From Octopus sinensis (Eukaryota): a stretch of 64,000 bases of DNA. Under the pieces are notes generated by a model. The model saw nothing but the letters and a program-made list of their open reading frames with translations, ran no database searches and was not told the DNA's origin. This document shows, piece by piece, positions 26,616 through 61,256 of this stretch. Positions within the stretch are counted from its first letter, which is position 1, and the number at the start of each line of letters is the position of its first letter. Where the stretch lies: contig NC_043002.1 in NCBI RefSeq assembly GCF_006345805.1, positions 4,154,001 to 4,218,000 on the forward strand, in the 5' to 3' direction. Made by a program: the position numbers and the translations under genes.

Positions 26616-26687
<72 letters not shown>

Positions 26688-26754: not shown

Positions 26755-26825
26755 TTAGTCAAAGAGACCAAAGCCCATGTCATCATCTGATTCTTCTGAC
26801 TCCTCTTTCTTCTCTTCTTTCTTTT
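26755..26825 (-). CDS. RPLP2: 60S acidic ribosomal protein P2, last coding exon
   Basis: (E)KKEEKKEESEESDDDMGFGLFD*; TTACAG acceptor; ATTAAA poly(A) signal at 26725-26730. Confidence 0.97.
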
Positions 26826-26962
26826 CTGTAATGGAGAATTAAAGGAAAAAATATAAATATTAGAAAAATACAGAAGGAAATTAAAAAGTAAAAAGAAAAA
26901 AAAATGTTTTTAAAGTGGAATAGAGGAAAGAGAAATGAAGAGGGAATGTTTTAGTCTCTCAC

Positions 26963-27058
26963 CTTCAGCTTTCTCTGCAGGTGCTGCACTAGAGGCAGCG
27001 GGTGCAGCAGAAACAGCAGCACCACCTCCACTTGGGACAGATGCAAGCTTCAGTTGAC
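26963..27058 (-). CDS. RPLP2: 60S acidic ribosomal protein P2, middle coding exon (96 nt)
   Basis: QLKLASVPSGGGAAVSAAPAASSAAPAEKAE; TTTCACAG acceptor, GTGAG donor; phase 1 on both sides. Confidence 0.97.
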
Positions 27059-27651
27059 CTGTGAAAGAAGAGAAAAAGAAACCCCAATCAAATCCAGACA
27101 CAATCTTTCTAAGGAACTGCAGTCAAGAAATAGAATCAACAAAACACCAGCATACTACATCACTGCAACAAATTCTGTAGGCTCTTTTAGTGGAAGGGCA
27201 CAACCTGCACATCCATCATAACTGTCATCTCTCTTTGAGTAAAGACCCTCCCCTCCTAAACCGGCCTTCATCAAACTGACCTTTGTGCAAGCCAACTCCA
27301 GTTTGTTACACGTTTAATACCTTATCCTCCAAGCAGCTCAAGCAACTCGAAGGCAGGTCAAGTTTTACGGCCAACTTTTGTTTGCACACACAAGTAATGT
27401 TGACTCATCCACCCCCAATTGAAAGAAGAAACAGAAAGAAAAGTCATAATCATTTAATGTCTGTTTTTTTATGCTGCCATGGGTTGGGACAGTTTGACAG
27501 GATCTGGCCGGCCAGAGAACTGTCGTCACAGGGCAACACAATTCTCTATGCGACACTTAACGACCATCTTTTTACAGTGTGTATCGGGTGCTTTTCTTTG
27601 CGCCAACACAAGTTACCAAGTGACTTGCAAGACAAAACGAAAGGAGGGCCA

Positions 27652-27827
27652 ATCATCATCATCGTTTAGCGTCCGTTTTCCGTGCTAGGATGGGTTGGAC
27701 GGTTCAACTGGGGTCTGGGAAGCCAGAAGGTTGCACCAGGCCCAGTTTGATCTGGTAATGTTTCTACGGCTGGATGCCCTTCCTAACGCCAACCACTCCA
27801 TGAGTGTAGTGGGTGCTTTTTACGTGC
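27652..27827 (-). repeat. RTE LINE 3' end in an RPLP2 intron
   Basis: Same family as the 8529-9790 copies. Confidence 0.8.
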
Positions 27828-27867
27828 AAATATCAACAACAAATAAACGTGGCAGTGCCAAAATTAC

Positions 27868-28039
27868 CTTCTTTAATGAGAGTGGCTGGGTCTTTGTCCT
27901 TAAGCTGTGAGATGACTTTCTTCATTTTACTGGCTTCGGCCTCAATACCAACGCTGCCTAAAATCTTCTCCAAATCAGCTTCAGTTGGTTGTTTCACACC
28001 CCCAAGGGTGGCAAGGAGATAAGCGGCCACGTAACGCAT
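27868..28039 (-). CDS. RPLP2: 60S acidic ribosomal protein P2, first coding exon (172 nt)
   Basis: MRYVAAYLLATLGG...KILGSVGIEA...; acceptor TTGCAG 1 nt before ATG, so a non-coding exon lies upstream; GTAATT donor; spliced CDS 339 nt = 112 aa + stop. Confidence 0.97.
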
Positions 28040-28384
28040 TCTGCAATGAGATAAAAGAAAATGCACACCTGTCAATAAGGCAAATTTATGTTACACTCAC
28101 TCATCTGACGACTGCATCTCATAATCTGAGACCCAGTTTTCAACACACTAAATACTAATTTGCTGTTACATTCACCTTAACAGAACTTCTCTAATAAAAA
28201 AATTATAAGGCAGCAAAAATATAATATAAATTGAAGTGAATCTCAGATTGAAAAATAAAAATGCATTTTAGGTTTCTTATTGTGTAACGTAAAAAATGAA
28301 ATTAAGAGGCTTTTGGGACAATTATTTACTAATTGAAGAGTTTATTTTTGTACACAGTTAAATCTCCACATTACTTGCCATAGA

Positions 28385-28695
28385 AGTACATCAGACGGTG
28401 GTAATGTAGCAATTAAGGTGGTAAGCTGGCAGAAACATTAGCACGCTGGGCGAAATGCTTAGCGGTATTTCGTCTGCCGTTACATTGTAAGTTCAAATTC
28501 TGCCGAGGTTGACTTTGTCTTTCATCCTTTTGGGGTCGATAAATTAAGTACCAGTTACACACTGGGGTCGATGTAATCGACTTAATACCTATGTCTGTCC
28601 TTGTTTGTCCACTCTGTGTTTAGCCCCTAGTGGGTAATAAAGAAATATAGAAAATTAATCAGGCTTTCAGAGCATCAAAAAGTCATCATCTGTTG
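28385..28695 (-). pseudogene. Box C/D snoRNA paralogue split by a SINE
   Basis: ATGATGA (28683-28689), D' CTGA, then SINE 28417-28646, then GCTACATTACCACCGT-CTGA, matching the D guide of the array copies. Confidence 0.65.
28417..28646 (+). mobile_element. tRNA-derived SINE (S3)
   Basis: Similar to 15505-15736. Confidence 0.85.
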
Positions 28696-29078
28696 AATGG
28701 CCGTAGTGGAGACTGCTGAAGTAAACAAATAGAAATTTGAGCACTTTTCTGTACTTAATGGTAACTACATTTTCTTAACTTACTTCTAAAAAGATTAACC
28801 TTACCTCTCAATCTCAACTGCTGATGTAAATTGTATGTTGTAGCATGCAAGTGAAAGCCAACATTGTGACCTTTCAATGACAATCACAAAACAGCCCAAA
28901 AATGCAAAGTTCTCTTACATAATTCCTGAGTGACAATAATGGATTTTTCATAGAAAAAGCTGATTGGCATATATTGTCTGGAGCCTAAATTGATACCAGA
29001 ATGAAGGAGTAGTTCAGAGCATGCAAGACTATTCACTCAATGTGGCACCACCAAGAAAGCCAAAGTCTGGAATATACA

Positions 29079-29208
29079 CATTGTCCGGTGTCTTAACGGG
29101 CACCTGACTGAATTAGCACAGTTGGTGTACGCAGGATCACCGAGTTAATGTAGCACTTTTAATCAGTAACTCACAATCTATGAAGAGTGAAAGTGGTCGA
29201 GGAAGTGC
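29079..29208 (-). ncRNA. Box H/ACA snoRNA candidate, copy 1
   Basis: 130 nt: hairpin GCACTT/AAGTGC, H box ACATTA, hairpin TCGGTG/CACCGG, ACA three nt from the 3' end. Confidence 0.85.
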
Positions 29209-29867
29209 AAATTTCAATTTGCATTACGAAGAATAACTTCCATTTTTTAAATATGTACATTTGTTTAGAACCATTTAATGAATATAGCATCTTCAAACAT
29301 GCTCACAATTTACAAGTACCGAGATTGCTGAGAAGTACCTTGTGAAGACATAGATCTATAGCTTTCCTCTGCTTTAAAGGAAAACATCCCAATTTACAAT
29401 CATGTTTGTCCTGAATTCAAAATGTAAGACAGATTTCAAACTCACAGGTAAAATACATGTCTTATATAGTTTAACAAAGAAATTCAAAATAACCTATTAA
29501 TCTTGGTAGAAACATGTCCTGCTTGCTCTGGTTTATTTAGCCATGTCTTTGAGGATAACACAAAAACGTTTACTTGTAACACCTGCAAAAACCCGACTCT
29601 TTGCAATACAGCATCTATACAAAAAAACTTTAAGAACAATGACTACAATTCCTTAACTATACTTTAAAACACTAAAGCTGTTGAAGGAACTCCCAACTTT
29701 CACACTTCTAAATGCTGATTTGCCAGGAATCTAAGAGCATCACTGTACAGTATTACTACCAACCAAAACCTCCCCTCTAGAGCATAAATTGGAAAAGAGA
29801 GAGAGGAAGCGAATACAATCAGTCGCCTTTCTAAATGATTTGTAAAGATGTTTCACAGGTGCCATAG

Positions 29868-29947
29868 CAGTATATCAGACGGTGGTAAAGTAGCATAAAA
29901 TCTTAATCATACAATCAGAAAATATTCGAAAGTCATCATCTATACTG
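29868..29947 (-). ncRNA. Box C/D snoRNA candidate, copy 1
   Basis: 80 nt: terminal stem CAGTATA/TATACTG, C ATGATGA, D' CTGA, C' ATGATTA, D CTGA. Confidence 0.88.
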
Positions 29948-31027
29948 TCTAGAAATGGCAGCTATGGAAACCCTAACCCATATGCCACACCTTCAGTTAT
30001 AAATAATTTCCATGTCTTAGCTTCCATTAGAACCCCAGATTTCAGCAACTGCTCCACAGTCCGTGTTAATTTAAAATCATAAAGACATATAATGTGCTGA
30101 ACATTATCCTAAATACTACTTCCCTCGCCTGAAAATAAATATAAAACTAGTCCAGACACAAACTATAATTCCAACGGCAACAATGACAAGACCCCTATTA
30201 CAGGGGGCAAATATCACTTGAGCAAAACTGGGCTTTCAGTTTTGCATGTTGGGCCTAATGTAACTTGCACACTGCTGCCCAGTGGGACTGAACTCAAACC
30301 AGCATGTCTCAAGTGAACATTTTTTTCATAAGGCCACACTTACTTGACAAACATTAACGTTGTATAAAAAAAAAGAAAGAAAAAAAGGTTTGAAGCCTAT
30401 ACGGTCACCTAAAAGAGAAAACTGGAAGTCCACTGGCTTCGACATGGTCTCTGGATGAGACTCTCTTTCAAGATCCCAGATGCCCCATTAGTCTACAATT
30501 CTACATAAACAAGATGCGCAATAAAATCACTATAGTAGTGATGTGCTTACTCCAGTAACCGAGACAATTGGTTAGAGAGAAGAGGGCAACTTGTTTAGAA
30601 ATAGCAGCCAAATTCCCTACAAACTCACATTAAAAATTCAGAAACGACCACTGAAACCTCTTTGATTACATTTGTTACAAAGAATGGCAAGTCTGTACTG
30701 CTAGTTTATTTCGAGAATTCCATGTGAAATGCAGTACAGACGAGTTCTCGGACTTTCGATACACATTTACATAAGAGGTTACAAACGGGGCAGCGCCTTA
30801 AGTCGTAATTCAGTGAAATCATACTGTGGACAGTGTTGTGGATGGCCCTGTATCCTTCAATGGCAAGCCCTGCATTTGATCTTGATCTCACTACCTAGGC
30901 TTTTAAAAGGTAATGACTTTAAATGGCCATAACTGTTAGACTTTCGAATTAGCTAAATTCATATCATTTCATACTGACATCAAAACAGGATCAGAACTCC
31001 TGCGTAGAAGCAGACTTAAATTATACA

Positions 31028-31157
31028 CATTGTCCGGTGTCTTAACGGGCACCTGACTGAATTAGGACAGTTGGTGTACGCAGGATCACAGAGTTAATGT
31101 AGCACTTTTAATTAGTAACTCACAATCTATGAAGAGTGAAAGTGGTCGAGGAAGTGC
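31028..31157 (-). ncRNA. Box H/ACA snoRNA candidate, copy 2
   Basis: Same boxes; one mismatch in the 3' lower stem and a G>A change in the 5' pocket. Confidence 0.75.
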
Positions 31158-31809
31158 AAATTTCAATTTGCATTACGAAGAATAACTTCCATTTTTTAAA
31201 TATGTACATTTGTTTAGAACCATTTAATGAAAATAGCATCTTCAAACATGCTCACAATTTACAAGTACCGAGATTGCTGAGAAGTACCTTGTGAAGACAC
31301 AGATCTATAGCTTTCCTCTGCTTTAAAGGAAAACATCCCAATTTACAATCATGTTTGTCCTGAATTCAAAATGTAAGACAGATTTCACAAACTCACAGGT
31401 AAAATACATGTCTTATATAGTTTAACAAAGAAATTCAAAATAACCTATTAATATTGGTAGAAACATGTCCTTCTTGCTCTGGTTTTATCTAGCCATGTCT
31501 TTGAGGATAACACAAGAAGGTTTACTCGTAACACCTGCAAAAACCCGACTCTTTGCAATACAGCATCTATACAAAAAAACTTTAAGAACAATGACTACAA
31601 TTCCTTAACTATACTTTGAAACACTAAAGCTGTTCAATGAACTCCCAACCTTCACACTTCTAAATGCTGATTTGCCAGGAATTTAAGAGCATCACTGTAC
31701 AGTATTACTACCAACCACAAACTTCCCTCTAGAGCATAAAGAGAGAGAAAGCGAATATAATCAGTCGCCTTTCTAAATGATTTGTAAAGATGTTTCACAG
31801 GTGCCATAG

Positions 31810-31889
31810 CAGTATATCAGACGGTGGTAAAGTAGCATAAAATCTTAATCATACAATCAGAAAATATTCGAAAGTCATCATCTATACTG
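31810..31889 (-). ncRNA. Box C/D snoRNA candidate, copy 2
   Basis: Appears identical to copy 1. Confidence 0.88.
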
Positions 31890-33380
31890 TCTAGAAATGG
31901 CAGCTATGGAAACCCTAACCCATATGCCACACCTTCAGTTATAAATAATTTCCATGCCTTAGCTTCCATTAAAACCCCAAATTCCAGCAACAGCGCTACA
32001 CTTGTTTATAAATCATAAAGACATATAACGTGCTGAACATTATCCTAAATACTATTTCCCACGCCTGAAAATAAATATAAAACTAGTCCAGACACAAACT
32101 ATAATTCCAAAGGCAGCAATGACAAGACCCCTATTACAGGGGGCAAATATCACTTGAACAAAACTGGGCTTTCAGTTTTGCATGTTGGGCTTAATGTAAC
32201 TTGCACACTGCTGTCCAGTGGGACTGAACTCAAACCAGCATGTCTCAAGTGAACATCTTTTTCATAAGACCACACTTACTTGACTAACATTAACCGGTTT
32301 AAAAAAAAAAAAAAAGATGGTTTGAAGCCTATACAGTCACCTAAACCACTGGCTTCGACATGGTCTGGGTTAGGGTATTCTCTAGTTGAGATTCTCTTTG
32401 AAGATCCCAGATGCCCCATTAGTCTACAATTCTACATAAACAAGATGCGTAATAAAATCACAATAGTAGTGATGTGCTTACTCCAGTAACAGAGACAATT
32501 GGTTAGAGAGAAGAGGGCAACTTGTTTAGAAATAGCAGCCAAATTCCCTACAAATCTCAGATTAAAAATGCAGAAACGACCACTGGAACTTCTTTAATTA
32601 CATTTCTGTTAGATTAGGGCTCATCTGAGGAAAAACTTCAAAAAGAAAGCAACATCCCATTAATTCCGAGAAATTTCAATTGCCCTAACACCGAAAAATG
32701 AGTCATACAAGGTTTATTCAAATATATTTTACAATAGTAACACAAAGACCGGGTTAGGACAAAATCTCATCAATATAATTAGTTCGGGTGCCCTTTCGCA
32801 GATGTCTATAAAATAAAAAGAATGGCAAGTCTGTACTGCTAGTTTATTTCAATAATTCCATATTAAAAACAACACAGACGAGTTCTCATGGACTTTCGAA
32901 ACACGAGATATTTTACTTCCCAAAACACATTTACATAAGAGGTAACAAACGGGGCAGCGCCTAAAGTCGTAATTCAGTGAAATCACACTGCAGACAGCGT
33001 TGTAGATGGCCCTGTATCCTTCAATGGCAAGCCCTGCATTTGATCACGATCTCACTACCTTAGGCTTCAAATATATTAAAAACAGTACAGACGAGTTCTC
33101 ATGGACTTTCGAAACACACTCACACAAGAGGTACCAAATGGGGCAGCGCCTAAACTCGTAATTCAGTGAAATCATACTGTGAACAGCGTTGTAGATGACC
33201 CTGTATCCTTCAATGGCAAACTCTGCATTTGATCTCGATCTCACTACCTAGGCTTTTAAAAGGTAATGATTTTAAATAGTCATAACTGTTAGACTTTCGA
33301 ATTAGCCAAATTCATATCATTCCATACGTACATCAAAACAGGATCAGAACTCCTGCGTAGAAGCAGACATAAATTATACA

Positions 33381-33510
33381 CATTGTCCGGTGTCTTAACG
33401 GGCACCTGACTGAATTAGGACAGTTGGTGTACGCAGGATCACAGAGTTAATGTAGCACTTTTAATTAGTAACTCACAATCTATGAAGAGTGAAAGTGGTC
33501 GAGGAAGTGC
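33381..33510 (-). ncRNA. Box H/ACA snoRNA candidate, copy 3
   Basis: Same variants as copy 2. Confidence 0.75.
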
Positions 33511-33579
33511 AAATTTTAACTTGCATTAAGAAGAATAACTTCATTTTTTAAATATGTACATTTGTTTAGAACCATTTAA

Positions 33580-33798
33580 CCCTTTAGTATTTAAACCGGC
33601 CATATCCGGCCAAAATAGTTAATCTGTTTTATGTTCAAACTGACCAGATCCAGGCTCTCACACCTACCCTACAATGTTATTCTACATTAAGTAATTACAC
33701 CATCAAGATCTTGAAGATATGAGATAATGCATGATTAATTCAAATCAATGGGAATCAATAAGCATTATGTTTGATAGAATAATCAGAACGCTAAAGGG
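33580..33798. mobile_element. piggyBac-type MITE inserted in one array unit
   Basis: TTAA|CCCTTTAG...CTAAAGGG|TTAA; the other units show the empty site CCATTTAATGAA. Confidence 0.9.
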
Positions 33799-34383
33799 TT
33801 AATGAAAATAGCATCTTCAAACATGCTCACAATTACAAGTACCGAGATTGCTGAGAAGTACCTTGTGAAGACATAGATCTATAGCTTTCTTCTGCTTTAA
33901 AGGAAAACAACCCAATTTACAATCATGTTTGTCCTGAATTCAAAATGTAAGACAGATTTCACAAATTCACAGGTAAAATACATGTCTTATATAGTTTAAC
34001 AAAGAAATTCAAAATAACCTATTAATATTGGTAGAAACATGTCCTTCTTGCTCTGGTTTTATCTAGCCATGTCTTTGAGGATAACACAAGAAGGTTTACT
34101 CGTAACACCTGCAAAAACCCGACTCTTTGCAATACAGCATCTATACAAAAAAACTTTAAGAACAATGACTACGATTCCTTAACTATACTTTGAAACACTA
34201 AAGCTGTTGAAGGAACTCCCAACTTTCACACTTCTAAATGCTGATTTGCCAGGAATCTAAGAGCATCACTGTACAGTATTACTACCAACCACAAACTTCC
34301 CTCTAGAGCATAAAGAGAGAGAAAGCGAATATAATCAGTCGCCTTTCTAAATGATTTGTAAAGATGTTTCACAGGTGCCATAG

Positions 34384-34463
34384 CAGTATATCAGACGGTG
34401 GTAAAGTAGCATAAAATCTTAATCATACAATCAGAAAATATTCGAAAGTCATCATCTATACTG
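34384..34463 (-). ncRNA. Box C/D snoRNA candidate, copy 3
   Basis: Appears identical to copy 1. Confidence 0.88.
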
Positions 34464-35433
34464 TCTAGAAATGGCAGCTATGGAAACCCTAACCCATATG
34501 CCACACCTTCAGTTATAAATAATTTTCATGTCTTAGCTTCCATTAGAACCCCAGATCTCAGCAACTGCTCCACAGTCCGTGTTAATTTAAAATCATAAAG
34601 ACATATAACATGCCGAACATTATCCTAAATACTATTTCCCTCGCCTGAAAATAAATATAAAACTAGCCCAGACACAAACTATAATTCCAACGGCAACAAT
34701 GACAAGACCCCTATTACAGAGGGCAAATATCACTTGAACAAAACTGGGCTTTTAACACTGCTGTCCAGTGGGACTGAACTCAAACCGGCATGTCTCAAGT
34801 GAACATTTTTTTCATAAGGCCACACTTACTTGACAAACATTAACTGGTGTAAAAGAAAAAAAAGATGGTTTGAAGCCTATACAGTCACCTAAACCACTGG
34901 CTTCGACATGGTCTGGGTTAGGGTATTCTCTAGTTGAGATTCTCTTTGAAGATCCCAGATGCCCCATTAGTCTACAATTCTACATAAACAAGATGCGCAA
35001 TAAAATCACAATAGTAGTGATGTGCTTATTCCAGTAACCGAGACAATTGGTTAGAGAGAAGAGGGCAACTTGTTTAGAAATAGCAGCCAAATCCCCTACA
35101 AATCTCACATTATTTCGAGAATTCCATATTAAAAACAGCAAAGACGAGTTCTCATGGACTTTCGAAACACACTCACATAAGAGGTACCAAATGGGGCAGC
35201 GCCTAAACTCGTAATTCAGTGAAATCATACTGTGGACAGCGTTGTGGATGGCCCTGTATCCTTCAATGGCAAACTCCGCATTTGATCTCGATCTCACTAC
35301 CTAGGCCTTTAAAAGGTAATGATTTTAAATGGTCATAACTGTTAGACTTTCGAATTAGCCAAATTCATATCATTCCATACGTACATCAAAACAGGATCAG
35401 AACTCCTGCGTAGAAGCAGACTTGAATTATCCA

Positions 35434-35563
35434 CATTGTCCTGTGTCTTAACGGGCACCACACTGAATTAGGACAGTTGGTGTACGCAGGATCACAGAGT
35501 TAATATAGCACTTTTAATCAGTAACTCACAATCTATGAAGAGTGAAAGTGGTCGAGGAAGTGC
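35434..35563 (-). ncRNA. Box H/ACA snoRNA candidate, copy 4
   Basis: H box ATATTA; lower stem TCTGTG/CACAGG is a compensatory double change relative to copy 1. Confidence 0.85.
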
Positions 35564-36173
35564 AAATTTTAACTTGCATTAAGAAGAATAACTTCATTTT
35601 TTAAATATGTACATTTGTTTAGAACCATTTAATGAAAATAGCATCTTCAAACATGCTCACAATTTACAAGTACCGAGATTGCTGAGAAGTACCTTGTGAA
35701 GACATAGATCTATAGCTTTCTTCTGCTTTAAAGGAAAACAACCCAATTTACAATCATGTTTGTCCTGAATTCAAAATGTAAGACAGATTTCACAAATTCA
35801 CAGGTAAAATACATGTCTTATATAGTTTAACAAAGAAATTCAAAATAACCTATTAATCTTGGTAGAAACATGTCCTGCTTGCTCTGGTTTATTTAGCCAT
35901 GTCTTTGAGGATAACACAAAAAGGTTTACTCGTCGACTACAATTCCATAACTATACTTTGAAACACTAAAGCTGTTGAAGGAACTCCCAACCTTCACACT
36001 TCTAAATGCTGATTTGCCAGGAATCTAAGAGCATCACTGTACAGTATTACTACCAACCACAGGTCCAACCCAAACCTCTCCTCTAGAGCATAAATTGGAA
36101 AAGAGAGAGAGGAAGCGAATACAATCAGTCGCCTTTCTAAATGATTTGTAAAGATGTTTCACAGGTGCCATAG

Positions 36174-36253
36174 CAGTACATCAGACGGTGGTAAAGTAGC
36201 ATAAAATCTTAATCATACAATCAGAAAATATTCGAAAGTCATCATCTATACTG
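36174..36253 (-). ncRNA. Box C/D snoRNA candidate, copy 4
   Basis: All boxes and the guide intact; one A>G change in the terminal stem. Confidence 0.88.
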
Positions 36254-37051
36254 TCTAGAAATGGCAGCTATGGAAACCCTAACCCATATGCCACACCTAC
36301 AGTTATAAATAATTTTCATGTCTTAGCTTCCATTAGAACCCCAGATCTCAGCAACTGCTCCACAGTCCGTGTTAATTTAAAATCATAAAGACATATAACA
36401 TGCCGAACATTATCCTAAATACTATTTCCCTCGCCTGAAAATAAATATAAAACTAGCCCAGACACAAACTATAATTCCAACGGCAACAATGACAAACCCC
36501 CTATTACAGGGGGCAAATATCACTTGAGCAAAACTGGGCGTTCAGTTTTGCATGTTGGGCCCAATGTAACTTGCACACTGCTGCCCAGTGGGACTGAACT
36601 CAAACCAGCATGTCTCAAGTGAACATTTTTTTCATAAGGCCACACTTACTTGACAAACATTAACGTTGTATAAAAAAAAAAAGAAAGAAAAAAAGGTTTG
36701 AAGCCTATACGGTCACCTAAAAGAGAAAACTGGAAGTCCACTGGCTTCGACATGGTCTCTGGATGAGATTCTCTTTCAAGATCCCAGATGCCCCATTAGT
36801 CTACAATTCTACATAAACAAGATGCGCAATAAAATCACTATAGTACAGATGTGCTTACTCCAGTAACCGAGACAATTGGTTAGAGAGAAGAGGGCAACTT
36901 GTTTAGAAATAGCAGCCAAATTCCCTACAAATCTCACATAAAAAAATTCAGAAACGACGACTTCAATGGCAAGCTCCGCATTTGATCTCGATCTCACCAC
37001 CTGGGCATTTAAAAGGTAATGATTTTAAATAGTCATAACTTAAATTATACA

Positions 37052-37180
37052 CATTGTCCGGTGTCTTAACGGGCACCTGACTGAATTAGGACAGTTGGTG
37101 TACGCAGGATCACCGAGTTAATATTGCACTTTAAAACAGTAACTCACAATCTATGAAGAGTGAAAGCAGTCGAGGAGTGC
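37052..37180 (-). ncRNA. Box H/ACA snoRNA candidate, copy 5 (divergent 5' hairpin)
   Basis: H box ATATTA, ACA box and 3' hairpin intact; several 5'-hairpin changes. Confidence 0.75.
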
Positions 37181-37400
37181 GTAACTTTTTAACTCACATT
37201 AACAAGAATTTTATTTTCATATGTACGTTTGGCTTTTCGTCTACAAACACGGATAAATTGAACAAAAACCTCGAAGTATCGTGGTGTTAATTTCAGTAAA
37301 TCTTGAACGAGCCACGTGGTCTCTGTTCTTAACATTTCCACACAGTTCCATAGAAATCGCCATTAATATCGAATGTGAACGCATATAAACTTATATATAT

Positions 37401-51040: not shown

Positions 51041-51113
51041 TGCCGAAACCCGGGATTGAACCAGGGACCTTTAGATCTTCAGTCTAACGCTCTCCCAACT
51101 GAGCTATTTCGGC
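51041..51113 (-). tRNA. tRNA-Phe(GAA)
   Basis: 73-nt canonical cloverleaf, intact A/B boxes, oligo-T terminator 17 nt downstream. Confidence 0.97.
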
Positions 51114-51757
51114 TGGTGAAAATTTGGCTATAAACTATCGCAGTCATTTCTACTCTGTATCAAGTTCAGAGTGAAATCAATTAGTGAAATTAATTAGTAA
51201 ACTGTGTAGAGATGAAAGGAAAGAATGACCCCACCGTCGGCGTTAGGATTCCCTGGCATTCTAACTTATTCTACGTTGAGAACTATTTCTTCTGTCGCAT
51301 ACCATTACTGTATTTTCCTCAGATTCTACTAATTCCATTTGATTGTTGTTTACACTGGCGCGTAAGGCCGTGTGATATGATTCGTATTTGGGATTATTCT
51401 ACACATGTTGTTACTATCTATTACGAAATTATTAACAGTATTATTTACCATTTTATTTATTCTATAGAAAAGAAAATGATCCTAGTTTTAGCTGAGACAG
51501 TATAGAATAATGTTTCTTTGTATTTTGTTCGTCCAACCACCCGCTTTTTGATGGCATATCAACAGTCATTAGGACCAAAAATTCAAGCTAAACTTCCAGC
51601 CTTTACATACCACTAAGTAAGATTTAAGGAGTACTAGCCCAGTACTCCTGAAATCCAATGGTTAGCACTCCAAGTTCAGAAACTCTACTATTATAGAAGT
51701 AATCGAAAAGCTTTGCAGCAAATAATTTAACCCTCGCAGCACTGTTTCCGCTTTCCG

Positions 51758-51912
51758 CAGAGGTCCCCAACCATTTCACTACCAAGGACTCCTTTTATTT
51801 AAATGAGTTTTCCCACGGACCCCTTTTAATACGCTTTGTATATATATAAAATTTTGAATTTAGTTCACGGATCCCAGTACTGCCTTTGCGGACCGCAGGT
51901 TGTGAACCACTG
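51758..51912. mobile_element. hAT-like MITE
   Basis: CAGAGGTCCCCAACC / GGTTGTGAACCACTG termini; no TSD match. Confidence 0.45.
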
Positions 51913-53029
51913 AGCGAATAGCCGATGTAATTACCCTGTTCTAACAGCCTATGTAATTACCAACTACGACCATCCAATCTTTTTGTCTATCGGGGACAAC
52001 ATTGTCTAATGTATCCTCTCTTTTTAATGTAGAAAGATGTGTGTTTCGAATGAGATTAAGCTGCTATTTCTAGCAGCCAAATTTAAGAGTTCGAGCAACA
52101 ACGCAAAACTTTATACTCGGTTATGTAGAATGATACCCATTACTCCATGGGGTACTTATTTACCCGTCGGGAAGCGAAAAGGCGGGATTCTAGAGAGTAC
52201 CTTGTCGAACGTATCCTTTAGCGCTTATTACCCTGTATTTCAAACAGAAGCAAAATAAATACAATTGTATAGTAAAAAAAAAAACTAATAGTAGATGCGT
52301 GGAGTTACATTAATTAACGTTCCAAAAATTCAACAGACACAATATATGTGTTTATTCACTCGTATTTGCGAAATAACTTCTGGTGGATCACAATGGAATT
52401 TATTACACCAAATATATCAGTTATGAACCGAACGAATTACATTTTAGTAATTAGTCGTGGAATATATATATATATATAGATTAAACGTTACATTGCTCCG
52501 CATGGTGTTACTTCCTATTATAACGGATTATGGTAACAAGTGAAATTTAAATATATTAAAGATTGCCGATTGCCTATTAAAAGATGTATATTTGTAGAGA
52601 TAATACAGTATATTGAAAAATGGTAAAAATTCTAAGAAGTATACATGTTTTTGTAGCAGCCTATAAACACACATATACAACAATATACGATCATTAAATA
52701 CATTTTATCATTTGTATTTCAGTTTTTCATTTTATTTTCGTATAATTTTTGCAATTATATAAGCATCTGACTCTACTAAAATTTAACATTAATTATCACA
52801 GTGGACAAAGAACCAGTTTAAATTTACATTGCAGTACTTAATTAGGTTCTGGGCGGTGCAGATCGATGAAATAAGGGCTATGTGTTGCCAAAATAAGTGG
52901 GTCTTCCCCAAATACGGCTTTGTGTTAGAAATCCCATATCGAAAAGAGAATAATTTACGCAGACATAAATAATTAAATTGTTATATACAACACGACTGAC
53001 ATCGATAATGTACAAGCATATCTTTACCA

Positions 53030-53102
53030 GCCGAAATAGCTCAGTTGGGAGAGCGTTAGACTGAAGATCTAAAGGTCCCTGGTTCAATCCCGGGTTTCGG
53101 CA
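53030..53102 (+). tRNA. tRNA-Phe(GAA)
   Basis: Identical 73-mer; oligo-T terminator. Confidence 0.97.
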
Positions 53103-53577
53103 TCCGGTGGCTGGTCTGCTTTTTTTTTTTTTTTTTTTTTTTCGTTCTTCATATTCTGTTTTCATTCATGTTTGAATCTAGGCCTGGCCAACTGTTCTTT
53201 TCAAAGATTTTATTTCTTATATATATACTTAACTCTTAGACATGACGTCGAGGCTATAACGTAATCCACAGAAAAGATAATCCTGTGAATACAAACAAAA
53301 TATAAGTTGCGGATCTTTTCTGTTTGATAGACGGAAACAGAAAAGATCCTCAGTTGCAATACGTTACAAAGTGAACGAAGAATCATAAGGTTTTTTACTC
53401 GCTCACACGCCGCCATCTCCCTCTCTTTCACTCGCGCGCTACGCACTCACACACACACACACACACGCACGCACGCACGCACACACACACACACAAAGGC
53501 GCGCAAGAATTCGTAGAGAGCAGTACTTACGTTCTAATTTCATCGGTAACTCTAGGTTGTGGGGCCAATGAAATCTG

Positions 53578-53804
53578 GGTACTACTTGAGAACAGTGGTC
53601 CCGGTGCGCGCACTAGCGTAGTCGCGCATCTGCGCTAGCTAGTCGTAAGTAGTCGATCCTACAACGATTACCTAGCAAAGTAAATAAAACACAAAACACA
53701 AAGTAAATAACACCCAAAAACACAAAGTAAGGATCGACTAGTCATGACTAGCTAGCGCGACTGCGCGAGTCCGCGCACCGGGACCACTGTTCGCTAGTAG
53801 TACC
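53578..53804. mobile_element. Merlin-type MITE, copy E
   Basis: GGTACTACT TIRs; flanked by a ~35-bp direct duplication. Confidence 0.85.
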
Positions 53805-53976
53805 CGGTAGGTAACTCTAGGTACTGGGGCCAATGAAATCTGTAGCACCCGAGGTGGATACGATCAATGTGTCGCCTTTTATTAAAAGCCATGACTACAA
53901 GAAAACGTCTTTGGTAAGAATGTACTTTGATATGCAATACGACTGACATGGAAAGTTTAGAGAGAAACCATTACCA

Positions 53977-54049
53977 GCCGAAATAGCTCAGTTGGGAGAG
54001 CGTTAGACTGAAGATCTAAAGGTCCCTGGTTCAATCCCGGGTTTCGGCA
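53977..54049 (+). tRNA. tRNA-Phe(GAA)
   Basis: Identical 73-mer; oligo-T terminator. Confidence 0.97.
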
Positions 54050-55075
54050 TCCGGTGGCTGGTCTGCTTTTTTTTTTTTTTTCGTTCTTCATATTCTGTTT
54101 TCATTCATGTTTGGATCTAGTCCTGGCCAACTGTTCTTTTCAAAGATTTTATTTGTATTCATTTCATCCCGGATCCCAACTACCTTTCATCCTTCTGGTT
54201 ATGTATTATATTACAGGTATGGTGATAAGTGCCCTCGCGCAAAAGTCTCGGACCTTGAGTCACTCTGTTGTTTCTGCTAAATATTAATAAAAATGTAATA
54301 TTATATTACATCAATTTTCAGCGACTTACTACCAATTTTTGTTCAAGCCTCGTGTTTCTTTTTTACGACTTCCATTAGTCTGCAACTATTCCTGCTTATA
54401 TCTTTCACCCAGTTAGCACCACGAGCTTAGGATCTCTCGAAGATTCTATCTATTTCGTATTCACCGTTTAAACTTTTTTTTCTAAAAGAAAACCACTCCA
54501 TTTCTTTAACCGTTTTAGTGTTATTTTTTCTCTTTTCATTTTTCTAATTATGATAACGAAAATGTTATTACAGTAATACTTAACTCTTAGACATGACGTC
54601 GAGGCTATAACGTAATCCACAGAAAAGATAATCCTGTGAATACAAACAAAATATAAGCTGCAATACGTTACAAAGTGCACCAATAATCATAAGATTTTTT
54701 ACTTGTAATTATTGGATAACTTAGTATCGTGACGAACTGCCTCTGTATCAATCTTGAGAATCTGGGTTTCACAAAACCAAAAAGAACTCGCTTAACAAAG
54801 ATATTACAGTTACAAGCTATTAAAGACACCGTGGGAATATGTGACACACTGAATAAGTGTAGCATATATTATATATGAAATATGTCATAAATCACAGTGA
54901 CAGATATATTGTTGTTGAGCGAAGGTGATAGGTGGAGAACTCGGAGTAACGATTTCTGAAGTTTTGGTCTCTCGTACAATGTCATTACTGAGTACTCTTT
55001 TCTACTCGATCACACGCCTCTTTCTCCCTCTCTTCAGTTTAACGCTCTCCCAACGCACGCGCACACACACACACA

Positions 55076-55146
<71 letters not shown>

Positions 55147-55374
55147 CACACACACCCACACACACACGCACGCACGCTAGTAGCACCCGGTAGGTAACTC
55201 TAGGTACTGGGGCCAATGAAATCTGTAGTACCCGAGGTGGATACGATCGATGAAACCCCTCTCAATGTGTCGCCTTTTATTAAAAGCCATATCTACAAGA
55301 CAACGCCTTTGGTAAGAATGTACTTTGATATGCAATACGAGTGACATGAAAAGTTTAAAGAGAAACCATTACCA

Positions 55375-55447
55375 GCCGAAATAGCTCAGTTGGGAGAGCG
55401 TTAGACTGAAGATCTAAAGGTCCCTGGTTCAATCCCGGGTTTCGGCA
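55375..55447 (+). tRNA. tRNA-Phe(GAA)
   Basis: Identical 73-mer; oligo-T terminator. Confidence 0.97.
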
Positions 55448-55699
55448 TCCGGTGGCTGGTCTGCTTTTTTTTTTTTCGTTTTTTATTAAATTTTAATTTT
55501 AATTTGACCAACTAATCCTTTCAATAATTTTATTTCCATTCATTTCATCCCGGATTCCACCTGCCTTCCGTTCCATTGGATTTGTTATATTCCTGATGCA
55601 AACAGGAAAAATATAACTCACACTTTGAGTGTATGTCTATTTCTATTAAGCTTCGAAAGTGCCAATGTACGAAACTCCGGGCCCTTGAGTCACTCTATC

Positions 55700-56220
55700 G
55701 CGGAATTTGTCACTGTTATTTATGAGAAAAAAGATACCCTGTGGCCATAAACTGAGGGCTCTCTCGTAAACAGAGCTGGATAACAAAACCGTTCCCTCTT
55801 TAGTGTCCACCCATAATTATGACCCTCGTATCGATCTATTGCATTTCAATCTGTTTTAGGATTAGGGTTAGGGTTAAGGTTAGAGTTAGGGTTAGGGTTA
55901 GGATTAGGATTAGGGTTCATGGCCACAGGGTATCTTTTTTCTCATAAATAACAGAGACAGATTCATATGACAGCGCAAATAATTGTAGTGGACAAAGATC
56001 CGGAGATATTGTATTCACCTCAATAGACGTCATTGATTGGTTGAAATTGCCGAAATGCAAGAAATTACACAACAAATAGCTTACAAACTACAGAATTTTC
56101 TCAAGAAAGCCAAGAGAAAAAGATGTTTTATGTAACACATTCTACCAGTATACGAAGTTTAAAAGTGTTTAGTTACAAAGAAATCATTTTAAAAATCTGC
56201 CGGTCAAAGCGAAAAGATCC
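55700..56220. mobile_element. Foldback element with central TTAGGG tract (left arm largely deleted)
   Basis: Telomere-like tract ~55855-55917; right arm matches 59310-59617. Confidence 0.8.
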
Positions 56221-56794
56221 TAATCTTATAATCCTATAATCTACAAATGAAATGACATTCATATCTGCACCCACCTGCTCCTGCGTGCAAACACATGTGT
56301 ATTCATTATGTATACATGTATACATGTGCGAGTATGCTTATGTACATGTGTTTATTAATGCATGCATACGTGCGTACATTGCATACATACAATGTATGAG
56401 ATTATCCTATTGGCGCTGTGTGAATTCCAATGAGTCTAATCTCTGGGCTAGAAATGGATTATTTTAACATTTAATTAGAAAAATTAACACCAAGTAATCA
56501 TATATATTGTTGTTGAGCGAAGGTGATAGGTGGAGAACTCGGAGTAACGATTTCTGAAGTTTTGGTCTCTCGTACAATGTCATTACTGAGTACTCTTTTC
56601 TACTCGCTCACACGCCTCCTTCACCTTCTCTTTCACTCGCGCGCTACGCACGCACACACACACACACACACACACCACACACACACACACACACACACGT
56701 ACACACACACACACACACACACACACGTACACCACACACACACACACACACACACACACAAAGGCGCGCAAGAATTCATAGAGAGCAGTACTTA

Positions 56795-58085
56795 CGAGGG
56801 GCGTTCAATAAGTAATGCCTCTGACCCACTTGCAGTTGTTTGATCTAGCTGAAATTTTGCATGTGCAATTATTTATATTTCTATAGATTACGTGGCAAAT
56901 TACAGCTCCGAACTAATTGTGGTTTCTGATTTACAGGTGTTTGAAATGAGTCAAGTGTGAAATGGAGCCTTTTAAGTGTCGAGCAATGATCCGGTTTTTG
57001 TATTTGAAAGGACGCACACCACGGGAGTCTTTTGATAAAATGAAAGTAACTTATGGTGATGATGCCCCTTCATATGACCTTGTAAAACGCTGGCATCGTG
57101 AATTCAAACATGGTCGGAACTCTGTGGAAACAGCTCCCAGATCTGGTCACCCCCTTCTGCCATTGATGAGGCATCTGTCCGTCAAGTTGAAGCTGCCATT
57201 TTGAAAGATCGACGCATAACTATTCGCCAAATAGCCCATGAGGTCAAGATCAGTACCGGGTCTGTGGAAACTATCATTCATGACCATTTGCATATGCAAA
57301 AGGTGTCTGCCAGATGGAGTCCCCAGGTTGTTCACACTTTTCCAGAAGCAAGAACGCGTCGGTGCTCGAGGATGAATTTAGGGATGTGCCAAGAAGATGA
57401 GTCAAAATTTTTCAAAAGACTGATTACACAGGATGAGACCTGGGTCCATCACTATGATCCAGAGACCAAAGCCCAGTCAATGCAGTGGAAGCACCATGAC
57501 TCACCTCCTCCAAAGAAGGCAAGGGTGCAGCCCTCCGCTGACAAGGTCATGCTCACAGTCTTCTGGGACTAGGACGGAGTAGTGATGACAGATTTCCTAG
57601 AAAAGGGTACCACAATTACAGGAGCCTATCATGCTTCACTTTTGAGGAAATTAAGAGAAGCTATCAAAACCAAGAGGCGGGGCAAGATCAGCAAAGGCAT
57701 CCTCCTCTTGCAGGACAACGCTCCGGTCCACAACTCGCGTGTCGCCAGATCAGAAGCACAGGCGTGCGGCTATGAACTCTTCCCTCATCCCCCTACTCTC
57801 CTGACCTTGCACCCTCTGATTTTCACCTCTTCCCAGCCATGAAGTTGTTTTTGAAAAGAAAGTGTTTCCCAGATGATGCAGCCTTGATTTCTGAAGTCAC
57901 ATCGTGGTTGGAAGACCAAGCTGGGGTCTTCTACGAAAACGGTCTCCAGAGCCGCATCAAACAATGGGAGAAATGCGTAACTCTGGGTGGTTCCTATGTA
58001 GAAAAAGACTAATAACTGTGCCAAGTTTCGTTGCTCTACTGCTATGGGAAGTGGATCAGGGGCATTACTTATTGAACGCCCCTCG
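56795..58085 (+). mobile_element. Full-length but defective mariner (DD34D) transposon, 1291 bp
   Basis: TIR CGAGGGGCGTTCAATAAGTAATGCC at both ends, TA TSD. Transposase 56962-58012 (ITQDETW, QDNAPVH, YSPDLAPSD) broken by frameshifts and a TAG at 57570. Confidence 0.95.
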
Positions 58086-58135
58086 TACGTTCTAATTTCA
58101 TCGGTAACTCTAGGTAGTGGGGACAATGAAATCTG

Positions 58136-58338
58136 GGTACTACTTGAGAACAGTGGTCCCGGTGCGCGCACTCGCGTAGTCGCGCATCCGCGCTAGCTAG
58201 TCGTAAGTAGTCGATCCTACAACGATTACCTAGCAAAGTAAATAAAACACAAAACACAAAGTAAGGATCGACTAGTCATGACTAGCTAGCGCGACTGCGC
58301 GAGTCCGTGCACCGGGACCACTGTTCGCTAGTTGTACC
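58136..58338. mobile_element. Merlin-type MITE, copy F
   Basis: Same position in the tRNA unit as copy E, with a small internal deletion. Confidence 0.85.
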
Positions 58339-58527
58339 CGGTAGGTAACTCTAGGTACTGGGGGGCCAATGAAATCTGTAGTACCCGAGGTGGATACGAT
58401 CGATGAAATCCCCCTTAATGTGTCGCCTTTTATTAAAAGCCATATCTACAAGACAACGCCTTTGGTAAGAATGTACTTTGATATGCAATACGAGTGACAT
58501 GAAAAGTTTAAAGAGAAACCATTACCA

Positions 58528-58600
58528 GCCGAAATAGCTCAGTTGGGAGAGCGTTAGACTGAAGATCTAAAGGTCCCTGGTTCAATCCCGGGTTTCGGCA
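58528..58600 (+). tRNA. tRNA-Phe(GAA)
   Basis: Identical 73-mer; oligo-T terminator. Confidence 0.97.
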
Positions 58601-58852
58601 TCCGGTGGCTGGTCTGCTTTTTTTTTTTTCGTTTTTTATTAAATTTTAATTTTAATTTGACCAACTAGTCCTTTCAATAATTTTATTTCCATTCATTTCA
58701 TCCCGGATTCCACCTGCCTTCCGTTCCATTGGATTTGTTATATTCCTGATGCAAACAGGAAAAATATAACTCACACTTTGAGTGTATGTCTATTTCTATT
58801 AAGCTTCGAAAGTGCCAATGTACGAAACTCCGGGCCCTTGAGTCACTCTATC

Positions 58853-59617
58853 GCGGATCTTTTCGCTTTGACCGGCAGATTTTTAAAATAATTTCTTTGT
58901 AACTAAATACTTTTAAACTTCGTATACTGGTAGAATGTGTTTATAAAACATCTTTTTCTCTTGGGTTTCTTGAGAAAATTCTGTAGTTTGTAAGCTATTT
59001 GTTGTTTAATTTCTTGCATTTCGGCAATTTCAACCAATCAATGACGTCTATTGAGGTGAATACAATTTCTGCCATAATGTGTCAACAACAATTATTTGCG
59101 GTGTCATATGAATCTATCACTGTAATTTATGAGAAAAAGATACCCTGTGGCCATAAACTGAGGCCTCTCTCGTAAACAGAGCTGGATAACAAAACCGTTC
59201 CCTTTTTACTATCTACCCATAATTATGACCCTAGAATCGATCTATTGCATTTTAATCTGGGTTAGGGTTAGGGTTAGAGTTAGGGTTAGGGTTAGGATTA
59301 GGATTAGGGTTTATGGCCACAAGGTATCTTTTTTCTCATAAATTACAGTGACAGATTCATATGACACCGCAAATAATTGTAGTGGACAAAGATCCGGAGA
59401 TATTGTATTCACCTCAATAAACGTCATTGATTGGTTGAAATTGCCGAAATGCAAGAAATTACACAACAAATAGCTTACAAACTACAGAATTTTCTCAAGA
59501 AAACCAAGAGAAAAAGATGTTTTATGTAACACATTCTACCAGTATACGAAATTTAAAAGTGTTTAGTTACGTGGAAATTATTTTAAAAATCTGCCGGTCA
59601 AAGCGAAAAGATCCCCG
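58853..59617. mobile_element. Foldback element: ~305-bp TIRs around a unique core and a TTAGGG tract
   Basis: Arms 58853-59158 and 59310-59617 are reverse complements; (TTAGGG)-like tract 59259-59310. Confidence 0.85.
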
Positions 59618-59806
59618 TTATGATACATATATTGCTGAGCGAAGGTGACGGGTGGAAAACTCGGGTTGACGATTTCTGAAGTTTTGGTTTCTTCTATAAG
59701 CCATCGCTGAGTTCTCGTTTCTATTCGCTCTTCCCTGTCTGCAACAGGAATGCGGTTTGGTATACAATACAATTGACATGGAAAGGTTAGACGCAATCAG
59801 CCGCCA

Positions 59807-59879
59807 GCCGAAATAGCTCAGTTGGGAGAGCGTTAGACTGAAGATCTAAAGGTCCCTGGTTCAATCCCGGGTTTCGGCA
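59807..59879 (+). tRNA. tRNA-Phe(GAA)
   Basis: Identical 73-mer; oligo-T terminator. Confidence 0.97.
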
Positions 59880-60957
59880 TCCGGTGGCTGGTCTGCTTTT
59901 TTTTTTTTTTTTATCTTTCGCTCTTCACATTCAAGTTTTAGTCTAGGTCTCACCAACAGTTCCTTTCACTGGTTTTATTTCCATTCCTTTCATCCCGGAT
60001 TCCACCCACCTTTCATTCCACTCGATTTATAATATATTACAAGTTTGGTGATGCAAACAAGAAAAATAGAATCCAAAATACGAGTGTATGTATATTTGTA
60101 TTAGGCTCCGCAAGTGCCAACGCATGAGACTCTCGGCCGTTGGGCCACTCTTTTGCTCCTGCTAAATATTAATAAAAATGTATCATATTGCATCAATTTT
60201 CAGCGACTCCCTACCAATTTTTGTCTAAACTTCACGTTTCTTTTTCAAGACTTTCATTACAGTCTCAACGGATTCCTGACAATACCTATTTCTTTACTAC
60301 CCACAAGGGGCCAAACACAGAGAGGACAAACAACGACAGACACACTGATTAAGTCGATTATATCGACCCCAGTGCGTAACTGGTACTTATTTAATCGACC
60401 CCGAAAGGATGAAAGGCAAAGTCAACCTGACAATACCTTTCACCTAGTTGCCACTACAAGCCTTTTATATCTCCTGAGGATTTTGTTCATTTCTCATTCA
60501 CCATTTACATTTTTTTTTCTTGAAACACAAACCACTTTTTTAATCGCCTTTTGCTATAAACTTGGGCTGACTAAAGCCTTGTGAATGGATTTGGTAGATA
60601 GGAACCGAAAGAAGGACTGCTGCAGTAAGCGTGTGAGTCTGAGAGGGGAATATGTTGAATAAAATCATAATTAACTGATCCTCCTGTGTTTTCTTTTACC
60701 TCAAGCCAAGAACTTTTCAGCACTACCTCGTACATGTAAGACTATGCTATTGATACTGTGTAAATTCCAATAAAGCGCCTCATGACTAGAAAATGGTTAT
60801 TTTCCCCCACTGGTGATTTATGCGAAAAATAAAAACAGGAAAACATGCGTCCATATAGTTTTGATCGAAAGTCAGGAACGGAAAACTCAGAGCAACAATT
60901 TCTTTTCCGCTTCTTCTCACTCAAATGCTCTCTCTTTCTTTCTCTCCCTCTGTGTGT

Positions 60958-61000
<43 letters not shown>

Positions 61001-61256
61001 GTAAAAAGGCGCACACATGAATTCATAGAGAGCCACTTTAAATCCTTTGCAGTACTTACATTCTGATTTCATCGGCAACCCCGGCTACTGGGGGCCAATG
61101 AAATCTGTTGTGCTGTGTTTGATATAACTGATTAAAGTACTCTCAGCTTGTCGCCTGATGTTAAAAGCCATTATCTACAGCAAAACGTCTTTGGCAAGAA
61201 TGTACTGTGAGACACAATACGATTGACATAGAAAGTTTAGATAAAAGCAGTCACCA

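Follow-up and report, generated by a model that had tools for sequence, protein, structure and literature searches.

In this study, we describe a tandem array of small nucleolar RNA (snoRNA) genes at the RPLP2 locus of Octopus sinensis. The array lies in a stretch of 64,000 nucleotides (NCBI RefSeq assembly GCF_006345805.1, contig NC_043002.1, forward-strand positions 4,154,001 to 4,218,000), hereafter called the window, and coordinates given without a locus name are positions in this window. RPLP2, on the minus strand, encodes the 112-aa large-subunit ribosomal protein P2, and its spliced product is identical to XP_029637770.1. A direct-repeat search, self-BLAST, and MAFFT alignment delimited four direct tandem units (29065-37037) followed by a homologous piece of ~197 nt (37038-37234), whereas Tandem Repeats Finder (TRF) made no array call only because its maximum period was 500. 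The original prediction for this DNA, a genuine tandem amplification of a cassette of one box H/ACA and one box C/D snoRNA, linked to RPLP2 and on the same strand, was borne out by these four units. The elements that make up the locus are as follows:

38211..38237, minus strand: RPLP2 core promoter, with two CACGTG E-boxes (38237-38232 and 38216-38211) just upstream of the terminal oligopyrimidine (TOP) start

38139..38202, minus strand: putative RPLP2 exon 1, a non-coding 5' TOP exon (CTCTTTCC...CTTAAAA, 64 nt, ATG-free) followed by a GTAAGT donor, with a predicted transcription start site (TSS)

28041..38138, minus strand: putative RPLP2 intron 1, a 5' untranslated region (5'-UTR) intron of ~10.1 kb, placed from the conserved exon-1 donor and the acceptor ttgcag/aATG at 28041/28040

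26755..28040, minus strand: RPLP2 coding part, comprising exon 2 (28040-27868, with the ATG at 28039), exon 3 (27058-26963), and the coding sequence (CDS) of exon 4 (26825-26755)

29065..37234, minus strand: tandem array, four units plus the ancestral distal H/ACA segment

29065-31013: unit U1, 1949 bp

31014-33366: unit U2, 2353 bp

33367-35419: unit U3, 2053 bp

35420-37037: unit U4, 1618 bp

The units are 93.2-96.8% identical to one another over shared columns, with the identity distributed among them as a mosaic, and private indels are found in every one. U2 contains a ~190-bp internal duplication and a ~160-bp insert, U4 carries deletions relative to the other units, and part of the differences in unit length is due to a miniature inverted-repeat transposable element (MITE) in U3:

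33576..33802, 227 bp: piggyBac-type MITE in U3, TTAA-CCCTTTAG...CTAAAGGG-TTAA

This MITE is a recent arrival, because the orthologous unit of Octopus vulgaris has no counterpart of it. At the same unit TTAA, O. bimaculoides carries a 1.5-kb piggyBac-like element (CCCTTTCG... ends, with an assembly gap inside; locus L005, 7467-8945).

An H/ACA copy stands at both the start and the finish of the array. Each unit encodes, on the minus strand, a 130-nt RNA of the form hairpin-ANANNA-hairpin-ACA, and a fifth copy lies in the distal segment:

29079..29208, minus strand: H/ACA copy of U1 (H box ACAUUA; ACA at 29084-29082; 3' pocket arms CCUGCGU and CCGUU)

31028..31157, minus strand: H/ACA copy of U2

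33381..33510, minus strand: H/ACA copy of U3

35434..35563, minus strand: H/ACA copy of U4 (compensatory change of G:C to U:A in the lower stem of the 3' hairpin; variant CACAGG, ...CACAGGACA)

37052..37180, minus strand: H/ACA copy 5, the distal, ancestral 'A' copy, with diagnostic differences in common with O. bimaculoides copy A (locus L005, 5097-5232)

Several observations place this RNA in the H/ACA class. The sequence folds into two hairpins (RNAfold z = -2.6), and RNAalifold independently gives the identical architecture; among the 14 copies found in four species, the H box reads ACAUUA or AUAUUA, the ACA is present in 14/14, and conservation stops ~3 nt past the ACA. The hairpin-hinge-hairpin-ACA organization is accompanied by a bipartite pocket whose top lies 15 nt from the ACA, within the 14-16 nt expected for this class. 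Over the aligned helices, 96.8% of cells are paired, with double-sided changes in two pairs only; covariation evidence is thin, because most pairs are invariant and too few divergent sequences are available. One of these two pairs is a U-C mismatch in three copies, and in U4 of O. sinensis a second change has re-established pairing as U:A, the mismatch still being there in the O. vulgaris orthologue of U4; the other has changed on both sides in Argonauta hians. Genome-wide, the H/ACA sequence was found at the five array sites only, together with one degenerate 76-nt fragment on another chromosome (C15). This fragment (G000:C15:46129639-46129714) matches the central part of the H/ACA RNA at 84% identity, with both pocket arms altered and both ends missing, and is a dead dispersed copy. 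Approximately 15-35 nt downstream of every H/ACA (30985-31010, and at the same place in U2-U4) lies UACGCAGGA, a 9-nt complement of the RNA's own 5' pocket arm UCCUGCGUA; a single position is mismatched in O. bimaculoides, Argonauta lacks the sequence, and the complementarity is probably due to chance.

The second RNA is an 80-nt box C/D snoRNA, likewise on the minus strand, which is present in each of the four full units and, in interrupted form, between the array and the ATG exon:

29868..29947, minus strand: box C/D copy of U1, with the external stem CCAUAGC/GCUAUGG at its flanks

31810..31889, minus strand: box C/D copy of U2

34384..34463, minus strand: box C/D copy of U3

36174..36253, minus strand: box C/D copy of U4 (single A to G change in the terminal stem, still G-U paired; variant ...CUGAUGUACUG)

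28384..28694, minus strand: fifth, RPLP2-proximal C/D copy, interrupted by a 233-nt insertion resembling a short interspersed nuclear element (SINE; 28643-28411) and with a degenerate D' guide

All four array copies have the boxes C (AUGAUGA), D' (CUGA), C' (AUGAUUA), and D (CUGA) and a 7-bp terminal stem (cAGUAUAg-AUGAUGA...CUGA-UAUACUg; 4/4 copies), which is retained in Argonauta via a G-U pair. These boxes and the stem, along with guides upstream of D' and D, identify the RNA by its sequence as a member of the box C/D class. The presence in each full unit of the two RNAs first proposed (130-nt H/ACA and 80-nt C/D) is confirmed at the sequence level. In the 2.72-Gb genome, the C/D sequence occurs at these four sites only. 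As for the RPLP2-proximal copy, the SINE insertion is common to O. sinensis and O. vulgaris, and the copy is intact in O. bimaculoides. The SINE-like repeat itself (28411-28643, 233 nt) has relatives at 39001-39241 (inverted) and in O. bimaculoides (locus L005, 19725-20062).

A comparison of the unit with Rfam gave sub-threshold matches for the C/D RNA (SNORD34 and SNORD24) and no family for the H/ACA RNA. The best C/D match was SNORD34 (RF00147), at 33.2 bits against a gathering score of 38; membership was rejected, as the match consists of the boxes and A/U-rich spacers, and the octopus RNA lacks the guide sequence of the family consensus (UGCAAAUAUUACCUACAUUG). Membership in SNORD24/U24 (RF00069) was likewise rejected, at 21 bits against a gathering score of 41 and with the guide register shifted by +5 and +4 nt; a search with RF00069 across the whole genome gave no match and is uninformative. 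Among the Rfam H/ACA families, including SNORA52, there was no octopus match at E <= 10 except a chance-level hit to ceN46 (13.7 bits).

The array was initially thought to lie upstream of RPLP2, a placement that the gene structure does not uphold. In all species compared, exon 2 begins a single nucleotide ahead of the ATG, which calls for a non-coding exon farther upstream. When the ~10 kb 5' of the ATG are compared between Octopus and Argonauta, significant similarity is confined to the two snoRNAs, the coding exon, and a block at 38221-38133. From this conservation, we infer that 38202-38139 is exon 1 of RPLP2 and that the whole array is contained in intron 1. The end of this exon is perfectly identical over 47 nt, through the GTAAGT donor, in O. 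sinensis, O. vulgaris, O. bimaculoides, and A. hians, and the proximal part of the promoter is conserved in O. vulgaris and O. bimaculoides and partly in Argonauta. Because the conserved E-box/TOP promoter and exon 1 (38237-38139) are distal to the array, the snoRNA units would sit inside the 5'-UTR intron of the gene and not upstream of it. The locus accordingly has the features of a TOP host gene with intron-encoded snoRNAs, of which the sense orientation is read directly and the TSS and splice sites are predicted from sequence conservation. The length of intron 1 is 10.1 kb in O. sinensis, ~5.5 kb in O. bimaculoides, and 3.3 kb in Argonauta. The invariant 47 nt of the exon-1 end and donor (38139-38185; Argonauta locus L006, 6637-6683) are conserved far beyond the snoRNAs or a usual 5' UTR and may act as a regulatory element. 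In O. vulgaris (GCA_951406725.2; locus L071, 1-9932 and 10001-11150), the annotation splits RPLP2 into a 74-aa product from an internal Met and a 76-aa model whose CDS extends over the full length of the snoRNA array before terminating in the +1 frame of the ATG exon; the 10-kb first intron has probably misled the ab initio annotation into producing the latter model.

Comparison with other octopods indicates how old the array is and how it could have arisen. The O. vulgaris genome, an independent chromosome-level assembly, contains four C/D copies, the SINE-broken fifth C/D, and five H/ACA copies, and the O. sinensis units are 97.5-98.7% identical to the O. vulgaris units at the same position versus 94.5-96.8% to the other units. 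Since each of the four units has its 1:1 counterpart in O. vulgaris, the array is not an artefact and is older than the split between the two species. That a single unit had been falsely expanded during assembly was already considered unlikely in the original prediction; in view of the unit-specific indels, the MITE, the internal duplications, and the recurrence of all four units in the separately assembled genome of the sister species, the chance of such an artefact is negligible. Synteny, suggested at the outset as a check, extends to the full array in O. vulgaris, while O. bimaculoides and Argonauta have two of each snoRNA. In O. bimaculoides, one full unit lies between the two H/ACA copies, and in A. 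hians the order is H/ACA, C/D, H/ACA, C/D, plus a partial H/ACA, all within 2.5 kb. The H/ACA copy-number series over the four octopod genomes is thus 2, 2, 5, 5. At the RPLP2 loci of scallop, abalone, and Aplysia, no snoRNA cassette was found within 8 kb.

By comparison of these genomes, the ancestral octopod layout is exon 1, H/ACA, C/D, H/ACA, C/D, ATG exon. The two ancestral H/ACA copies would have constituted ~190-nt direct repeats ~2 kb apart, between which repeated unequal (non-allelic homologous) recombination could duplicate a block of spacer, C/D, spacer, and H/ACA. One such block, as in O. bimaculoides, would have become four prior to the split of O. sinensis and O. vulgaris, with later inter-unit exchanges producing the mosaic pattern of identity. 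The homology between the distal copy and the units extends over ~190-197 nt in both O. sinensis and O. bimaculoides, which, like the H/ACA copies at both ends of the array, speaks for the recombination model; an exchange of this kind would yield exactly the block seen here. The array had been predicted to consist of four units and a partial fifth; the four full units stand, but the supposed fifth is not a truncated product but the ancestral distal H/ACA, which is also present in O. bimaculoides. The extra copies would further have supplied redundancy, such that a SINE could destroy the RPLP2-proximal C/D without loss of a guide.

The guides of both RNAs were paired with the rRNA of the octopus itself, using the conserved 28S copy on O. 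sinensis C2 and the 18S copy on C12776. The rDNA copy at C11589:29000-38999, although scored by Rfam as a full 18S/5.8S/28S, was rejected as a target because it is degenerate and lacks the U24 tract. For the C/D RNA, the D' guide UUCGAAUAUUU forms 11 contiguous Watson-Crick pairs with 28S AAAUAUUCGAA, beginning at position 2 from D', a match equalled by 2/200 shuffles. The D guide UACCACCG pairs over 8 bp from position 2 and, after a UU bulge in the guide, over a further 6-7 bp (GCUAC(A)); its partner is the 28S segment directly adjacent upstream, namely the 8 bp of CGGUGGUA and, after the bulge, GUAGCA(A). The D guide is invariant from Octopus to Argonauta, and the perfect D' guide is specific to the array-type copy of Octopus. 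When the whole genome was searched for 17-nt sequences perfectly complementary to the D guide, only the snoRNA genes were returned, with near-matches at control frequency and none of them in an Rfam RNA. The C/D RNA is predicted to 2'-O-methylate two uridines in the 28S tract GAUCUCGG[U]GGUAGUAGCAAA[U]AUUCGAA (targets in brackets), which is located at G000:C2:131725246-131725278. Because the register is shifted, the fifth-nucleotide rule would place 2'-O-methyluridine (Um) at the equivalents of yeast U1442 and U1455 and not at the U24 sites.

For the H/ACA RNA, the 3' pocket arms CCGUU and CCUGCGU, which are invariant across genera from Octopus to Argonauta, face 28S AACGG-[UA]-ACGCAGG with 5 + 7 = 12 Watson-Crick pairs, a match equalled by 4/200 shuffles; a distance of 15 nt separates the pocket top from the ACA. 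No credible or conserved target was found for the 5' pocket. The H/ACA RNA is thus predicted to pseudouridylate the bracketed U in the 28S loop CAAACGG[U]AACGCAGG, a site within G000:C2:131732148-131732175. The substrate oligonucleotide of the methyltransferase ZCCHC4 is AUCACCUGUCAAACGGUA(m6A)CGCAGGUG, where m6A is N6-methyladenosine, and represents the hairpin loop of human 28S A4220 (PMC6954407; PMC6834594). Because the octopus target sequence is this substrate loop, the predicted pseudouridine (Psi) would be the U two positions 5' of A4220. It corresponds to yeast U2641 and adjoins the equivalent of yeast Am2640, a 2'-O-methyladenosine (PMC5699541). An equivalence with yeast Psi2735, the snR189 site, was rejected, as the ZCCHC4 papers place the site in the A4220 loop, that is, at yeast U2641. 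The same 28S hairpin loop, UCAAACGGUAACG, is modified by ZCCHC4 in human (m6A4220; PMC6954407) and by snR68 (Am2640) and Bmt5 (3-methyluridine, m3U2634) in yeast (PMC5699541). The octopus H/ACA RNA shares this loop with them, its ACGCAGG arm partner beginning at the A4220 equivalent, but the predicted modification is a pseudouridine via an H/ACA guide, in contrast to those made by stand-alone methyltransferases or a C/D guide. With regard to the rDNA copies used here, many dispersed rDNA-like copies exist on many chromosomes (34 and 40 matches per probe); the C11589 copy is degenerate in universally conserved tracts, and in the C2 copy conserved 28S landmarks lie ~6.4 kb apart versus the usual ~1.5 kb, which suggests an insertion or a large expansion.

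We regard it as likely that the locus represents a lineage-specific tandem expansion of an intron-encoded H/ACA and C/D pair in the RPLP2 5'-UTR intron, all copies of which have been kept under constraint, and the array is probably functional. Constraint was assessed over the eight array units of O. sinensis and O. vulgaris by comparing snoRNA columns with flank columns. Only 1/80 C/D columns is variable, compared with 10.1% of flank columns (p = 0.0025), and the corresponding figure for the H/ACA columns is 5.7% versus 10.1% (p = 0.07). Neither the C/D guides nor the H/ACA 3' pocket differ among the array copies of the two species, so there has been no guide diversification and the expansion would change dosage only; of the two benefits first envisaged, a higher dosage is compatible with the data and diversified guides are not.

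An unlikely alternative holds that the duplication was neutral, with each snoRNA required and produced from a single copy and the remaining copies silent or decaying and homogenised by gene conversion. The mosaic of unit identity suggests such conversion, a SINE has already eliminated one C/D copy, two copies suffice in O. bimaculoides and Argonauta, and for the H/ACA copies the excess of conservation over their flanks is not significant. Against these points stand the near-invariance of the C/D across eight copies in two species, the intact boxes, guides, and pocket arms in every array copy, and the repair of a stem mismatch by a compensatory change in one H/ACA copy. Recent homogenisation must also have been limited, because the units remain 1:1 orthologous.

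Several observations nevertheless weigh against a constrained, functional expansion. Among paralogous units, conservation of the H/ACA RNA does not significantly exceed that of the flanks (p = 0.07-0.13), and the identity of the copies could result partly from gene conversion rather than from selection on each copy. Both RNAs fall below every Rfam gathering score. The contiguous duplex of the D guide is 8 bp long, is equalled by 87/200 shuffles and thus non-significant alone, and needs the 2-nt bulge in order to be extended. To our knowledge, none of the three predicted 28S sites is modified in yeast or human. Finally, several snoRNAs in one animal intron would need either endonucleolytic release or internal exons.

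The last of these points bears on how the RNAs are made. In the expansion favoured here, all snoRNA copies would be transcribed within the abundant RPLP2 pre-mRNA and then cut from the intron. It is possible, though on balance doubtful, that each unit is instead an exon-intron-snoRNA module, with short spliced non-coding exons leaving one snoRNA per intron, either in a multi-exon 5' leader of RPLP2 or in a co-linear non-coding isoform; each amplification step would then bring in complete introns. The acceptor-like tracts noted in the original prediction are indeed present (30139-30123, also in U3 and U4, and 29788-29769), and such polypyrimidine tracts recur 60-100 nt downstream of every C/D, both in Octopus (29777; O. 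bimaculoides locus L005, ~6941) and in Argonauta (locus L006, ~8283 and ~9290), a distance typical of C/D RNAs whose assembly depends on splicing. Two GT donors, at ~29990 and ~30555, are kept in O. bimaculoides, where a strong donor at 28805 (GAG/GTAAGG) is also conserved. However, a sensitive comparison of Octopus with Argonauta revealed no conserved internal exon, although exon 1 is conserved; AG and GT dinucleotides with pyrimidine tracts are frequent in sequence of 36% GC; and a long multi-exon leader would be unusual for a TOP mRNA. Moreover, the C/D external stem is conserved while its sequence differs by genus (CCAUAGC/GCUAUGG in Octopus and GCUGCUAUU/AAUGGUAGC in Argonauta), which is typical of splicing-independent processing.

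Another route of expression, in which the snoRNAs form their own or polycistronic transcription units driven from a candidate pyrimidine-rich element in each unit (CCCTCTTCTCTCTAACCAAT, at ~30585-30560), is considered very unlikely. Many invertebrate snoRNAs are independently transcribed, and every unit, as well as the O. bimaculoides locus, contains a TOP-like pyrimidine tract together with a CCAAT and a GTAAG donor. The CCCTCTTCTCTCTAACCAAT motif, however, is not significantly conserved in Argonauta, and in all four octopod species the cassette is found between exons 1 and 2 of RPLP2 and on the strand of that gene.

Several known systems resemble parts of the octopus locus. The C/D RNA recalls U24/SNORD24/snR24, an intron-encoded C/D snoRNA of ~76-80 nt whose D and D' guides address adjacent segments of the 28S tract GAUCU(U/C)GGUGGUAGUAGCAAAUAUUC: in both, the more upstream of these segments pairs with the D guide and the more downstream one with the D' guide, and the cores ACCACC and AAUAUUU are common to the two (Rfam SNORD24 alignment). 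The octopus RNA differs in that its pairing register lies 5 and 4 nt further toward the 28S 3' end and its D duplex is broken by a 2-nt bulge. U24, whose human 28S sites are C2338 and C2352, is hosted by RPL7A in human and ASC1 in yeast, whereas the octopus host is RPLP2. The sites of yeast snR24 in 25S are Cm1437, Am1449, and Gm1450 (PMC5699541). In human, RPLP2 also hosts an H/ACA snoRNA, SNORA52 (PMC11495440), so that in both animals an H/ACA RNA occupies an intron of the same ribosomal-protein gene. Common descent is unlikely, because no cassette was found within 8 kb at RPLP2 of scallop, abalone, and Aplysia. The predicted octopus target, a U in the A4220 loop, also differs from the SNORA52 site.

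The array had been put forward as the best candidate for an undescribed system in the window, a view that is not upheld, since tandem duplication within a gene ('cis' duplication) is a described main route of snoRNA expansion and yields, in one host gene, paralogues that keep their sequence and structure (vertebrate gas5-like hosts, chicken, and platypus; PMC2653536). The octopus case departs from these examples in that the duplicated block combines two snoRNA classes and its host is a protein-coding TOP gene, whose 5'-UTR intron may by itself contain up to ten snoRNA genes. With SNORD115/116 and SNORD113/114, the array has in common the head-to-tail repetition of a snoRNA-bearing unit. Those imprinted arrays comprise tens of copies, one per intron, of orphan guides in long non-coding hosts, with parent-of-origin expression; the octopus array, by contrast, consists of 4-5 copies from each of two classes, both complementary to rRNA and both residing in a protein-coding housekeeping host, and so is not of the imprinted type.

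This is an ordinary kind of snoRNA expansion that leaves the understanding of how snoRNAs work unchanged. It does offer a datable case of snoRNA family growth, in which two direct intronic repeats would have seeded unequal recombination and the copies stay constrained. It also leads to a corrected RPLP2 gene model, with exon 1 placed 10 kb upstream, and to three predicted rRNA sites, one of them in a 28S loop that different lineages modify differently. A more far-reaching proposal, for which the odds seem poor, is that the cassette introduces octopod-specific rRNA modifications at conserved sites (a Psi two nucleotides from the m6A4220 position and two Um in the U24 tract) and was amplified adaptively in the O. 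sinensis / O. vulgaris lineage, perhaps because up to ten snoRNAs leave one 10-kb intron by an inefficient, splicing-independent route, with copy number setting stoichiometry. If true, the locus would be a large single-intron snoRNA cluster of an animal with copy-number-tuned ribosome modification.

The surroundings of the gene hold a few further features. In Mizuhopecten and Haliotis, RPLP2 is arranged head-to-head with MED21, and MED21 exons were not detected anywhere across the 64 kb of the octopus window. Directly past the RPLP2 3' UTR, at 26620-26684, are (AT)15 and (AG)17 microsatellites. On the other side, 1.5-3.5 kb upstream of the RPLP2 promoter, a fragment of a long interspersed nuclear element (LINE) at 39700-41850 on the minus strand contains open frames with reverse-transcriptase-like motifs (e.g., YADDCDLV). 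Farther along the window, nine tRNA-Phe(GAA) genes lie on both strands within less than 12 kb (51041-62835), eight of them scoring 69.8 bits with Rfam and one diverged copy 47.8 bits.

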